Below are positions 534 to 18,025 of a stretch of DNA of 64,000 bases, piece after piece (positions within the stretch are counted from its first letter, which is position 1; every line of letters begins with the position of its first letter). The translations under genes and the position numbers were made by a program. The DNA lies in sequence record NC_031010.1. One strand, 5' to 3'. The notes under the pieces were generated by a model, which worked only from the letters and a program-made list of their open reading frames with translations, did no database searches and was not told the origin of the DNA.

Positions 534-1364
534 ATGAGAAAGTTACTCATTGGGGTATTGGCATTTTTAAGCTTTTCGGTCATGGCGGGCGAGAACGTCA
601 TCATCACCACAGGCCAGCAGGGTCTGACGTATAACTCCGTGTACGGGGTGAACTTAGCCGGTGCGTTGGCCGAGTTCGGTAACAAGTCGCAGGTCGTCCC
701 GTCCAAAGGGTCGCTGGATAACCTCGACAAAGTCGCGGCGAATGAAGCACAGGTTGGCTTCACGCAGGCAGATGCATTCCAGTTCTGGCGCGCTAAGCAC
801 CCGAACGAAGCGCAGAACGTAGACATCGTTGGCCAGTTAGCCCGCGAATGTGTCTGGGTAGCTGTGAAGCAGGATGGCAAAATTGGTAAAGCCGAAGAGC
901 TGACTAACGGTGCGAAGATTGCGGTCGGTGAGCCCGATAGCGGTTCGTACGCCAGCTGGCAGTATCTGCAGCAACTGGTAAAAGAATACGGTAAAGCTGA
1001 GACCTACGCCAAAGGCGGTATCCGTTCACTGGCCAAAGTGGCAACCGGTGAATACGATGCATTCCTGTGGGTGTCGGCTCCGGGCAAACCCAATAAGTTT
1101 CTGGATGCGGTCAACCAAGACGGCTCTGGCTTAAAACTGATTGATATGTCCACGTGGAACGTGAACGACAAACTGCCGAACGGCCAGTCTGTGTACACCA
1201 AAGAGTCTGCTAAGGTGAATAACAACATCTGGAATAGCTCGGTGGATGTTCCGTGCACCACGACGCTCGTTGTTGCCAACAACAACAGTAGCGAAGACCT
1301 GCTTGAAGCGGTGTCGACGATTCTGCTGAAGAATCAGTCCCGTGTCCTCGGCACTGCGAAATAG
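534..1364 (+). CDS. TAXI-family (TRAP-associated) periplasmic solute-binding protein
   Basis: Signal peptide MRKLLIGVLAFLSFSVMA; motifs TG..G.TY, SKGSLDNL, GFTQAD, IAVGEPDSGS typical of TAXI/type II periplasmic binding proteins; start moved to ATG 534. Confidence 0.8.
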   Translation: MRKLLIGVLAFLSFSVMAGENVIITTGQQGLTYNSVYGVNLAGALAEFGNKSQVVPSKGSLDNLDKVAANEAQVGFTQADAFQFWRAKHPNEAQNVDIVGQLARECVWVAVKQDGKIGKAEELTNGAKIAVGEPDSGSYASWQYLQQLVKEYGKAETYAKGGIRSLAKVATGEYDAFLWVSAPGKPNKFLDAVNQDGSGLKLIDMSTWNVNDKLPNGQSVYTKESAKVNNNIWNSSVDVPCTTTLVVANNNSSEDLLEAVSTILLKNQSRVLGTAK

Positions 1365-1960
1365 TTATCTGACAGTACGGCCGATGTGGGCTGATATCCC
1401 CATCGCGACGGAACGCGAGATTGCTGTTATCGCGAAGCGTAGACCGCAAGCAGACCCGTAAGCCTTGCGCAGCCGGGACACACAAAGCACTATTGCTTCG
1501 GCGGTAGGTGTCCCGTCCGTTCACAACTTATTCGATGAGCGAAACATGATTAGAGCCTTTGTGCAACATGCTCTTGGCCTTCTTCGGAATGTCATCAGCA
1601 ACATGCGCTTCTGGAGGCTCGATACTTATTGGTTATCAGGCTGTGGGACTGTACGCCATAAACCTGTTTCAGGACGCAAGTCCTCAACTCCGGCGCACGT
1701 CGTGAAGGACGAAGGTCAAGCACCAGCCCATTAAGCTGACTCGCTGACAAAAGCAACCTTCACCCACAATTTGAAAATAACTGATGGGATTGAGTTCCCA
1801 GATGCGAAAGAGTAGCTGTGTGCTACTGAGCACCTCCCCGGGACTGCTGAGCAGCGGGGGAATAGGGCCAACAAGAAAGTAATCGGAGGGGATGGCTCGA
1901 GAGACATTAGCCCGCGGGCACTGTTACTCACGACCTGCATCCCCTCCTGTTTAAAGATGA
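1365..1960 (+). ncRNA. candidate large structured ncRNA (~600 nt)
   Basis: No credible ORF; many helices, two cUUCGg loops (1497, 1583), GCAA tetraloop hairpin 1671-1684, 10-bp stem 1885-1894/1938-1947. Confidence 0.55.
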
Positions 1961-1975
1961 GTTAGTATATATGTT

Positions 1976-2051
1976 GCAGGCATAGCTCAGTTGGTAGAGC
2001 ATCTGATTTCCAATCAGAGGGTCGTCAGTTCGAACCTGACTGTCTGCTCCA
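1976..2051 (+). tRNA. tRNA-Gly(UCC)
   Basis: Cloverleaf: acceptor GCAGGCA/TGTCTGC, anticodon loop TTTCCAA, GTTCGAA T-loop, U73, encoded CCA. Confidence 0.95.
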
Positions 2052-2882: not shown

Positions 2883-3036
2883 TGACACCCGCACCTCAAA
2901 ACCCTGGGTATTGCACCCAGAAAAAGAGTGCTGGCAGCCAATAAAGGCATCCGTTAGTAACCGTAGCCTTCGGGCGTAGATGGTGAAGACCGCCAAGTGC
3001 AGCCTTTAGAACTCCGTGGGATTCGGAGGGGTGTCA
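2883..3036 (+). ncRNA. 154-nt structured RNA with tRNA-like acceptor and T-arm top
   Basis: Terminal stem TGACACCC/GGGTGTCA, T-arm-like CTCCG-TGGGATT-CGGAG just before the 3' strand, nested internal helices. Confidence 0.55.
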
Positions 3037-3170
3037 CCTACACACGTTTAGAGAATCATCCTCTCTGGACGACCCCAATGGGCGCGCGGGGTGTTGATGT
3101 CTTAGGCCAGCAGCTTAAGACTAAGTCGTCTGACGTTAATTCGTCAGGGGGCGAGCGGCCACGCAATTTC

Positions 3171-3243
3171 TCAACGGTAAGCAAAACTGTGATGCACTGT
3201 GCTCGCGAACAGAATAGGTGGGTTAGAATCCCATAACCGTTGA
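3171..3243 (+). ncRNA. 73-nt tRNA-like RNA
   Basis: Stem TCAACGGT/ACCGTTGA, T-arm GTGGG-TTAGAAT-CCCAT; no D-arm or standard anticodon loop. Confidence 0.5.
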
Positions 3244-3252
3244 CCCTTTTAT

Positions 3253-3328: not shown

Positions 3329-3330
3329 CC

Positions 3331-3781
3331 TTTGCTCTGAGATAACTGTGAATGGCATTCCGGAAAAATTTCATTCAACCTAACACGTGCGGTCGTCTCA
3401 GCGCAAAACCCTTTCGGGATAGTGAACCCTGCAAACCGATGTGCTTGCATATCGGGTGTCCGCTATCCCGGACCTAATACAGACGGAAGCCGAATAGGTT
3501 TTTCTAACGCACTTACGCCCAGAGCCATTACGGGCTTCTGTCTGTACCAAATAGGGCATGGAGAGAGGTTGGCGATAATAGGCCGCCCTGTCTGTGTCCG
3601 TCCTTGTTTGTCGGGTAGGTAGTTCGCTTCCCCCCATGGATGCTGGCTGTGTCAGCCTGCCCGACAATCCACATTAGCGCGCTTGCTAATAGGTGTCTGA
3701 ACCTGACCCGTCGGATACTGCCCAGGTAGTTAGAAAGACTTCGACCACACCAGGGTACCCCCTCTCCGTTTTGGAGAGGGG
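3331..3781 (+). ncRNA. candidate structured ncRNA region (~450 nt)
   Basis: Consecutive long helices 3331-3407, 3415-3470, 3478-3546 (followed by CCA), 3608-3667, ending in a 9-bp hairpin 3759-3781. Confidence 0.5.
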
Positions 3782-3800
3782 AATACTCTATTTTATTTCG

Positions 3801-3820
3801 GATAGATATTATCTCTGTGA
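3801..3820 (+). promoter_or_regulatory. putative phage early promoter, RATAGATATTATY-N3-RTGA
   Basis: GATAGATATTATC-TCT-GTGA; the motif recurs 8 times upstream of genes. Confidence 0.7.
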
Positions 3821-3867
3821 ACGAAGATGTATTCACTTTAATCGACTGATCACAGAGGCCAGTAAAT

Positions 3868-16213: not shown

Positions 16214-18025
16214 ATGGTCAAAGAAGTTACTCCTACTCAAACTGCACAGTCTACTACTACTCAGCAGACTACTCAGACTACCCAGTCAGCTCCACTGAAC
16301 ACCGGCGCAAGCTCGCTGGACTTCGGTTCTCTGGGTGCAGCAGTTACGATGGACCAGGCCTTCGGCTGGCAGTCCGTCTCTTCCATGGCGAATGATTTCG
16401 TCACCCGTATTGCGAACCACGCCAAAGAAAATCCAAACGCTCGTCTGGACCGTTTCAAAGTTGGCATGGTCGAAGCTATCTCTCAGTCTGACTTTGCCTC
16501 CGGTGCCTACGTTGCGCTGCAGTACAAAGACCAGTGGCTGTACGGCATCATCCTGTTCGAGAAAGGCGACAGCATGCGTGTTGTGGTTAACAACAACGTT
16601 GAGTCGTACTACACCGTTGCCGGTCTGGTAAACAAAGACGTGCTGCGCAGCGTTGAAGCGGCAGCCGGTGAAAAGCATGGCATCGGTAACATGGCCTTCA
16701 TCTCCCTGAACGCTGTGCCGGATCTCGGCAAGCAGATGGACGATGCATGGGCACTGCAGCTGATGGGTCAGATGCTGACCGGTATCGCTGGTCGTATCGC
16801 CGGTGCACTGGGCGACGCTAAGCTGTCTAAATCTGACCGCTTTGCCATCAACGTGGCTGGCGTTCCATCTGGTGTTGTAGTTGATACCAATGCTCACCCA
16901 CAGCGTGCTGGTTTCGCACTGTCTGTGAACCATCAGCAGCAGACCCAGAACGAAGCAGGCCCAACCCTGCTGAGTAATGGTGGTGACCGTACACTGCCTA
17001 AGACCGTTGCAACTGGTTTCGTTAACCTGCGCTACACCGGTCTGAAGCCACAGGTTCAGGGCGTTACTGACCTGAAACAGCTGCAGGGCGAAGTGGTGGT
17101 CTCTCTGGTCGATTCTCAGATGGCCGGTTCTAAAGCACCGTACGAACGTCACCTGCTGGCACTGGCTGCCTTCGCTGACATTGCACAGATCGGTGGATGG
17201 CGCAGTGAGCTGAAGAACTCTCTGAACAACAGCGACCGTAAGTTCTCTGCGGTAGCATCGTACCTGAGCTGGGGCGGTGAGAAAGTTGATGTTAAGAAGT
17301 TGGACGGCAACCGCGATGCAATCGACATGGCACTGGATACCTTCTGCCCGGCTCAGGCTGCGCTGGTTGTATCACATCGTGCAGGTAACGGTCTGGGTGG
17401 TCTGTCAACTCTGCTGGCAGAAATCGCAGTGGGCAACGTGAACTCTCTGGCACAGCTGCTGAACATCGCAGACGCCATGTTCCCGGGCGACACCAAGTTC
17501 CGTAACATCCTGGCTACCAATCTCGGCGGCGTGACTGAAATCAAAACCAGCCACATCGTTGCAGCTGCAGTACCGACTATCGCTGGCCTGTACGTAGGTA
17601 CCGGTGAGAAGCGTTCTGCTGCTGATATGGATCTGGTATCTGTGCTGACCCACCTCGGCGACAAACAGTCTGATGCGTACCGCTACATGCATGCGCAGTC
17701 ATTCTCTAACCGTCAGATGGATCAGAAAGAACAGCGTATCTACCTGCTGAAACTGGCAGCGTCCATGTACGGCGGTCGTGAGTTCCGTCCTACTGGCGAA
17801 TCACTGGATATGGCTATCCATCCGGTGTTCGCTAAGACTGTACTGGATTGCGTACGCGGTTCTGTATCTGCATGGCAGCTGAACGGTGTCGAAGCGCACG
17901 ACGCGATGACCAACAGCCTGTTCACCAACAACGGCAACGAAACCTTCGTTCTGTCTGGCGGCGGCAGCAATGGTTCATTCAACAACTTCGACCTGAGCCT
18001 GACTACCAACTCCTTCACCCTGTAA
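16214..18025 (+). CDS. chmA: chimallin, major phage nuclear shell protein
   Basis: 603 aa, low-complexity T/Q N-terminus, highly biased codons, immediately upstream of the nvRNAP beta' N-part, the conserved chmA position; assigned by size and synteny. Confidence 0.8.
   Translation: MVKEVTPTQTAQSTTTQQTTQTTQSAPLNTGASSLDFGSLGAAVTMDQAFGWQSVSSMANDFVTRIANHAKENPNARLDRFKVGMVEAISQSDFASGAYVALQYKDQWLYGIILFEKGDSMRVVVNNNVESYYTVAGLVNKDVLRSVEAAAGEKHGIGNMAFISLNAVPDLGKQMDDAWALQLMGQMLTGIAGRIAGALGDAKLSKSDRFAINVAGVPSGVVVDTNAHPQRAGFALSVNHQQQTQNEAGPTLLSNGGDRTLPKTVATGFVNLRYTGLKPQVQGVTDLKQLQGEVVVSLVDSQMAGSKAPYERHLLALAAFADIAQIGGWRSELKNSLNNSDRKFSAVASYLSWGGEKVDVKKLDGNRDAIDMALDTFCPAQAALVVSHRAGNGLGGLSTLLAEIAVGNVNSLAQLLNIADAMFPGDTKFRNILATNLGGVTEIKTSHIVAAAVPTIAGLYVGTGEKRSAADMDLVSVLTHLGDKQSDAYRYMHAQSFSNRQMDQKEQRIYLLKLAASMYGGREFRPTGESLDMAIHPVFAKTVLDCVRGSVSAWQLNGVEAHDAMTNSLFTNNGNETFVLSGGGSNGSFNNFDLSLTTNSFTL

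Follow-up and report, generated by a model that had tools for sequence, protein, structure and literature searches.

The window analyzed here, a 64,000-nt stretch of DNA, comprises bases 1–64000 of the genome of Erwinia phage vB_EamM_Kwan (NC_031010.1), a 246-kb jumbo phage of the genus Wellingtonvirus. In the gap between gp3 and tRNA-Gly lies a module in which three covarying hairpins make up a 5′ domain, a 62-codon gene follows, and five to six further covarying hairpins form a 3′ domain (Table 1). The GenBank record places two hypothetical genes, gp4 and gp5, across this region and lacks the conserved reading frame at 1546–1734. The reading frames of gp4 and gp5 are open in Kwan and Wellington only, and both overlie covarying RNA helices; they are therefore probably mis-annotations and not genes. 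An initial annotation of this DNA had instead proposed a large non-coding RNA of many hairpins under selection. Each helix that it listed (1382-1405, 1445-1469, 1475-1481/1508-1514, 1553-1557/1616-1620, 1711-1716/1756-1761, 1811-1827 and the 10-bp stem 1885-1894/1938-1947) is present with perfect complementarity, as are the AGGAC-GCAA-GTCCT element at 1671, the cUUCGg tetraloops at 1496 and 1582 and the GCAACATGC repeat at 1563 and 1598.

Table 1. Features of the Kwan locus, with positions in the window
Feature	Position	Strand	Basis or pair counts
gp3, TAXI-family TRAP solute receptor gene	534-1364		GenBank
gp4, hypothetical gene	1342-1461	+	GenBank
Whole conserved module (small ORF flanked by 5′ and 3′ structured domains)	1378..1951	+	nhmmer, RNAalifold
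H1 hairpin, CGAUG(U)GGG / CCCCAUCG, conserved loop YUGRURU	1382..1405	+	9 pairs, 5 double-changed
Variable insert between H1 and H2	1406..1441	+	alignment, Kwan MFE structure
H2 hairpin, conserved 11-13-nt loop (GCAnACCnnUAAGyC)	1445..1469	+	covariation
H3, outer stem 1475-1481/1508-1514, inner stem 1490-1496/1501-1507 with cUUCGg cap	1475..1514	+	
Small protein gene, 62 aa, basic, start ATG 1546	1546..1734	+	comparative genomics
Two hairpins in 3′ part of ORF: AGGAC-GCAA-GUCCU (1671-1684), CGUC-GUGAAG-GACG (1693-1706)	1671..1706	+	by eye
Three-tier hairpin opening the 3′ domain, 1714-16/1756-58, 1719-21/1743-45, 1724-26/1736-38	1714..1758	+	covariation
gp5, hypothetical gene	1731-1940	-	GenBank
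Conserved unpaired CACAAUYUGA	1765..1774	+	ACAAU invariant, remainder nearly so
Near-invariant hairpin UGGGA-UURAGU-UCCCA	1785..1800	+	5 pairs, 100% paired, G-U variation only
Hairpin GUAGC-UGUGU-GCUAC, conserved UGUGU loop	1812..1826	+	5 pairs, 4 double-changed, 100% paired
Variable cassette hairpin, CCCCG..CGGGG around CUGC-UGA-GCAG	1836..1859	+	alignment
Terminal domain, long irregular hairpin, outer stem 1885-1894/1938-1947	1881..1951	+	covariation
GUAUAUAUG, 3 nt before tRNA-Gly	1965..1973	+	motif comparison
tRNA-Gly(UCC), first of eight tRNAs in array	1976..2051	+	ARAGORN, Rfam
ATAGATATTATCnnCRTGA sites	3805, 7152, 16071, 16158, 24206, 25594, 29296	+	

A profile of the gap, searched with nhmmer, finds the full-length module of ~570 nt in 19 SPN3US-like jumbo phage isolates from four genera, namely Wellingtonvirus, Erskinevirus, Machinavirus and Seoulvirus, the last including Salmonella phage SPN3US. 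A 14-base pattern scan of IMG/VR returned about 100 chance matches; specific patterns recovered the known clade, six more uncultivated viral genomes of 240-250 kb that also carry the module, and chance matches within coding sequence. Scans of metagenomes and GTDB genomes yielded chance matches only, which the covariance model rejected, and the module is absent from the Siatvirus phage KpLz-2_45, although that phage shares the TAXI gene and the tRNAs. In all of these searches, the module is restricted to one clade of Enterobacterales jumbo phages. A tRNA array lies downstream of it in every case, whatever gene precedes it. The upstream neighbor is the TAXI-family gene in most, not all, relatives, and SPN3US, SPAsTU, SNUABM_29 and ChrisDB have other small genes there. 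Primary-sequence identity between phages is 55-79% for the module versus 72-79% for the neighboring protein gene, indicating that the module is no better conserved by this measure. In some Machinaviruses, a 110-aa ParB-like gene is inserted between the module and the tRNA array (L008, 3202-3534; also L010, L011, L135 and L136), preceded by TATATATG and a good ribosome-binding site. We rejected the idea that the Kwan gap is a decayed copy of this gene, as no remnant of the Parshik ParB-like gene was found in Kwan. Elsewhere in the window, positions 16575-16706 (+ strand) match the 5′-domain model weakly (13.9 bits, E = 0.053), probably by chance.

Covariation provides the evidence that the module folds as an RNA. 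An RNAalifold consensus of 18 sequences contains 73 base pairs, 32 of them with compensatory double changes, and places no conserved pairing in the N-terminal coding half of the ORF. Both structured parts were aligned with covariance models and compared with two controls, shuffles and slid pairing partners. In the 5′ domain (Kwan 1379-1517; four helices, 26 pairs), 96.6% of cells pair and 17 pairs show double-sided changes; its covariation score of 0.626, compared with at most 0.096 for slid partners, was matched by none of 500 shuffles. The 3′ domain (1713-1954; eight helices, 45 pairs) pairs in 95.9% of cells, with double-sided changes in 18 pairs and a score of 0.322 versus at most 0.071 for slid partners, again matched by 0 of 500 shuffles. 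Compensatory support, drawn from 17 related phages, extends to H1, H2, H3 and its inner hairpin, 1714-1716/1756-1758, 1812-1826 and the terminal stem. Stems are rewritten whole between genera: H2 of Kwan reads CGCAAG/CUUGCG and that of phiEaH2 ACGUGG/CCACGU. Invariance is common in loops and linkers, as in the H2 loop, ACAYAAAG, ACAAUYUGA, the hairpin UGGGA-UURAGU-UCCCA and the loop UGUGU. Expansions of variable length occur in some stems, and a single hairpin acts as a swappable cassette. G·U cells outnumber A·C cells by ~7:1 (about 101 versus about 14), and this excess places the constraint on the + strand as RNA, not on the DNA. Judged from these alignments, an evolutionarily conserved folded RNA is encoded on the + strand upstream of the first tRNA, and on this central point covariation supports the initial annotation.

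The case rests on covariation and not on thermodynamics, because single-sequence folding energies are mostly ordinary. A fold more stable than shuffled sequence, which the initial annotation had taken as a requirement, is found for the whole region (z = -3.3, from 20 shuffles only) and for the terminal hairpin, which lies at the extreme of the individual domains (-3.25); the 5′ domain lies at the other end (-0.31). The minus strand folds about as well as, or better than, the + strand in the same tests. Consequently, single-sequence z-scores neither separate the strands nor prove structure. The density of stable tetraloops, offered earlier as a sign of selection, is weak evidence: CTTCGG/CCGAAG occurs 65 times in the window, and CTTCGG, a common terminator loop of Kwan, is enriched upstream of ORFs together with T-runs. 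A pseudoknot search of the module returned none above the parallel-run control. One long-range candidate would join GCUCG within the ORF (1617-1621) to the UGAGU hairpin loop (1791-1795); it is kept in 17 of 18 genomes and shows a C:G to U:A switch, and we do not claim it, since the parallel-run control gave equally good runs.

From 5′ to 3′, the module begins with H1, in which the Kwan cells counted as unpaired are a register artefact of a one-base bulge. The insert that follows folds, in Kwan, SNU11, Erskinevirus and some of Machinavirus, into an optional hairpin; the Caitlin and SPN3US types lack the insert. H2 pairs in 99.2% of cells and has double changes in six of its seven pairs. H3 (helices 3 and 4) is paired in 100% of cells, with 6 of 10 pairs double-changed; its internal loop, ACAYAAAGCA, is conserved, and the length of its apical part differs among phages. 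The helix 1553/1616, the second cUUCGg and the 9-nt repeat, which had been counted among the elements of the RNA, fall within the N-terminal coding half, where no pairing is conserved; they are lineage-specific, and the repeat is already broken in phage Wellington. The two hairpins in the 3′ part of the ORF both lie outside the RNAalifold consensus. Alignments read by eye show the first becoming GAGAC/GUCUC in SNU11 and AGAC/GUCU in SPN3US, and the second GUCCG/CGGAC in phiEaH2, CGUCUA/UAGACG in Asesino and GUCCC/GGGAC in SPN3US; read in this way, the lineage changes are compensatory while altering amino acids.

The three-tier hairpin that opens the 3′ domain carries the stop codon of the ORF, UAA (1732-1734), in its apical loop, and this codon is invariant in 18 of 18 genomes. 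Further downstream, the cassette position is occupied by at least three or four unrelated versions that are not distributed by genus, and the pattern suggests recombination within the RNA at this hairpin. Asesino, pSal-SNUABM-04 and SPN3US, which belong to three genera, carry a nearly identical cassette; their close relatives carry unrelated versions. The terminal domain (helix 6) has 16 pairs, 7 of them double-changed, and 97.6% of its cells are paired. In Kwan and Wellington, the outer terminal stem is kept via compensatory change, the interior is replaced and the AGAAGAAGAAG loop of other phages is absent; Kwan has the lowest R2 score among the phages. Since these two phages have lost the conserved interior, that part of the domain appears dispensable or replaceable.

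Within this structured RNA, the RNA proposed to be non-coding contains a gene. The ORF at 1546-1734 shares the frame of the 1465-1734 ORF, whose translation had been named as a possible refutation of the non-coding proposal. On the + strand, an ORF of 55-64 codons is open in 18 of 18 aligned genomes and likewise in additional uncultivated viral genomes; the two other frames contain 0-4 stops each. A tblastn search with Parshik gp9 finds a related peptide encoded at the same place in every gap. Counted over eight roughly independent genome pairs, differences at codon positions 1/2/3 of the ORF number 52/41/80 (p = 0.0009), and restricting the count to the first 38 codons gives 37/30/60 (p = 0.003). 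Both flanking domains give flat counts (5′ 48/51/54 and 3′ 75/81/76; p = 0.84 and 0.87). The dN/dS ratio is below 1, mostly 0.1-0.5, and the clear indels are of 3 or 6 nt and in frame. By these comparative measures, the ORF is a conserved small protein gene under protein-level purifying selection. The Shine-Dalgarno element upstream of it is weak or badly spaced in several lineages. Taken together with the status of gp4 and gp5, which in Kwan are probably not genes, the missing 62-aa gene corrects the annotation of about 25 genomes.

The encoded protein has a pI of about 10-11, except in Erskinevirus, and matches PHROG 26199 (E = 1.1e-4 for Kwan, 1e-49 for Parshik, 1.4e-8 for Caitlin and 7.6e-5 for SPN3US). 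That family was built from Machinavirus annotation only, has no assigned function and no Pfam domain, and its entry does not recognize the gene's place inside a structured RNA. The small protein itself matched no Pfam family, and a word-indexed protein search with the Kwan peptide gave no match; a HMMER profile search of 1.84 billion representatives returned only four small-protein clusters, all from lineages that carry the module. AlphaFold2, run on a 10-sequence alignment, predicts one helix (residues 2-30, pLDDT about 80) followed by a low-confidence tail, with amphipathic character in the helix and disorder predicted for the tail. No transmembrane segment is present by hydropathy, the highest 19-residue Kyte-Doolittle mean being ≤1.05. 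Gene and RNA overlap at their junction, where the last codons of the ORF and its stop codon lie inside 3′-domain helices. The C-terminal third alone shows a non-significant trend in codon-position differences (15/11/20). Given this periodicity and the predicted disordered tail, the C-terminal third seems to be shaped at least as much by RNA as by protein.

Scans for sigma-70-like promoters (both strands) and U-tract terminators were uninformative, finding none. A strongly conserved phage motif, ATAGATATTATCnnCRTGA, occurs at seven intergenic + strand sites and is probably a phage promoter class; none of the sites precedes base 3805, and neither the module nor the tRNA block has one ahead of it. 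The R2 match to the 3′ domain abuts tRNA-Gly in phiEaH2 and Asesino (3850 versus 3851 in L003 and 3307 versus 3308 in L006, respectively), which leaves no room for a separate promoter. There, the tRNA would consequently be co-transcribed with the module or be driven from inside it. In SNU11, Caitlin and Parshik, too, the terminal hairpin is followed by the GUAUAUAUG motif, which is not enriched in the window and could be a phage promoter or processing motif. Kwan, SNU11 and the Machinaviruses all have a TATATATG motif after this hairpin, and the GTATATATG 9-mer is not enriched in the window.

We compared the module with known RNA families. Within it, no Rfam 15 family, including ROOL, GOLLD, OLE, introns, tmRNA, T-box, Y-RNA-like and hok/sok families, was found with cutoffs of E ≤ 10 for Kwan and E ≤ 3 for ten homologous loci, and all Rfam matches at these loci are tRNAs or tRNA-derived. 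A tmRNA was rejected: ARAGORN found none, Rfam gave no match, and the ORF, at 55-64 codons, begins with an AUG, which the tag ORF of a tmRNA lacks. A group I or group II intron was likewise rejected, as no model matched and both neighbors of the module, the upstream gene and the tRNA, are complete. Membership in ROOL (RF03087) was discarded because its covariance model is unmatched, the phage location by a tRNA island being shared; the GOLLD model (RF01998), which covers the conserved 3′ region, is also unmatched. Our literature search found no description of the module RNA, which is apparently an undescribed structured mRNA or dual-function RNA.

Dual-function RNAs, such as Staphylococcus aureus RNAIII (hld), SgrS/SgrT and SR1/SR1P, are structured RNAs that also encode a small protein. 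The module shares this combination, as its ORF is under protein-level purifying selection and its RNA structure exceeds coding needs, and RNAIII, with about 514 nt and about 14 hairpins, is of similar size. In contrast to these RNAs, to which it is not homologous, the module is phage-borne, heads a tRNA array, has no known base-pairing target and contains a longer ORF that overlaps a structured 3′ domain. Non-tRNA RNAs that are joined to a tRNA transcript and released by tRNA processing enzymes are exemplified by the stable RNAs in the tRNA cluster of phage T4 (species 1/2, rnaC/rnaD) and by tRNA-mRNA co-transcripts such as E. coli tyrU-tufB. The module likewise adjoins a tRNA unit; a relation to the T4 RNAs was checked by the Rfam scan. 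The T4 RNAs are shorter (about 120-140 nt) and non-coding, unlike the ORF-bearing module, and to our knowledge have no known function.

ROOL and GOLLD are RNAs of hundreds of nucleotides, found in phages and prophages, often beside tRNA islands, and of unknown function (bioRxiv 10.1101/2024.12.08.627333). The initial annotation had drawn a parallel to them, which stands for size (~570 nt), phage origin and tRNA adjacency and goes no further among the points it raised. The module also has an elaborate covarying structure with variable regions; it differs from both in having no sequence or structure match to them, in holding a conserved protein ORF and in being confined to one clade. A further feature of ROOL is its homo-oligomeric RNA nanocage.

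The interpretation that we favor, with modest confidence, is that 1378-1951 forms one + strand RNA module, a heavily structured mRNA and probably a dual-function RNA. According to this model, the module would be transcribed rightward together with the following tRNA array, and RNase P cleavage at the 5′ end of the first tRNA would free it, leaving the long terminal hairpin as a protective 3′ end. The small basic protein would be translated from the same RNA. Because the stop codon lies inside a 3′-domain hairpin, a ribosome that reaches it would have to melt the first helices of the 3′ domain, and translation would thus be coupled to RNA folding. The many invariant unpaired nucleotides imply a specific partner or a tertiary fold, and candidate partners are the module's own basic peptide, a phage factor or a host factor. 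Consequently, the RNA probably does more than stabilize its message. Several observations count against this interpretation: the weak or badly spaced Shine-Dalgarno elements of several lineages, the non-significant periodicity of the C-terminal third, the mostly ordinary folding energies and the loss of the terminal interior in Kwan and Wellington.

The same observations permit other accounts. The locus may encode an ordinary small-gene mRNA whose flanking hairpins act only in cis, for stability, termination or processing, with no function of the RNA itself. In its favor, the ORF is real, the terminal hairpin occupies the place expected of a 3′ end, ahead of a possible promoter motif, and cUUCGg hairpins are common terminators in the Kwan genome. 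However, about 380 of the 570 nt are non-coding and hold eight or more compensatorily maintained helices together with the invariant loops and linkers ACAYAAAG, ACAAUYUGA, UGGGAUURAGUUCCCA and UGUGU, which goes far beyond the needs of stabilizing hairpins, and a U-tract terminator is absent; we regard this account as possible, on the unlikely side. At the opposite extreme, the ORF could be secondary, or a modulator of folding, within a large ornate RNA that is autonomous in the manner of ROOL and GOLLD and is, for example, multimeric and linked to the tRNA array. The size and the position in a phage beside a tRNA island agree with those RNAs (bioRxiv 10.1101/2024.12.08.627333), and the ornate covarying structure, its variable-length expansions and the swappable cassette also speak for this account. 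Given that the ROOL and GOLLD models of Rfam match neither Kwan nor 10 homologues, that an N-terminal stretch of 38 codons evolves as protein without conserved structure, and that no pseudoknots exceed the control, we consider an autonomous RNA decidedly unlikely. The module might also represent a new class of large ornate phage RNA, specific to SPN3US-like jumbo phages, that is at the same time an mRNA and forms a higher-order particle, alone or with its own basic peptide. The target of this particle would be the neighboring tRNA array or the ribosome, and its task might be, for instance, to protect or deliver tRNAs or to take over translation. We offer this particle as a speculation that is unlikely to hold as stated; if true, it would provide a functional analogue of ROOL and GOLLD in a genetically tractable phage.

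A small ORF within a phylogenetically conserved mRNA fold also recalls type I toxin-antitoxin loci, where a tightly folded, hok-like mRNA encodes a small toxic peptide. Here, however, the protein is basic, with an amphipathic helix in place of a transmembrane segment, Rfam gives no hok/sok-type match and the module keeps a fixed syntenic position in a lytic phage clade, all of which make a toxin very improbable. The conservation could, in principle, reflect an element that acts as DNA, such as an origin, a packaging site or protein-binding inverted repeats, or it could reflect decayed genes or tRNAs. The module does lie near the annotated genome start, its minus strand folds about equally in single-sequence tests, and decayed tRNA-like pieces occur elsewhere in the array. 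Yet the excess of G·U over A·C cells points to a strand-specific constraint at the RNA level, the module has no tRNA or other Rfam signal, and the Parshik ParB-like gene has left no remnant in Kwan; we give such explanations hardly any credence.

The module, for which we favor the structured and probably dual-function mRNA, is a new RNA family, separate from ROOL and GOLLD, that combines the character of a large phage RNA adjacent to a tRNA array with that of a dual-function RNA. Large structured RNAs beside phage tRNA arrays, as in ROOL, GOLLD and the T4 stable RNAs, are an old functional puzzle. The module adds an independent example with unusually clean covariation, and it does so in cultured, sequenced phages that include Salmonella phage SPN3US, for which, according to a study as cited in the literature, essential genes have been identified. 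It also supplies a handle missing from the earlier examples, a co-evolving small protein with a frame that extends into the folded 3′ domain. Because of this overlap, the question of peptide versus RNA becomes directly testable.

Two further regions near the tRNA array deserve mention. Between tRNA-Asn and gp14, positions 3329-3867 comprise 540 nt without a convincing ORF, conserved within Wellingtonvirus only and, as pieces, in SNUABM_11. Within the array, the non-tRNA blocks 2500-2622, 2925-3038 and 3175-3245 are conserved across genera, and it is possible that they are further structured RNAs or decayed tRNAs. The last of these has a weak tRNA score (20.8 bits), and block 2925-3038 is 94% identical to phiEaH2, compared with 72% for the TAXI gene.
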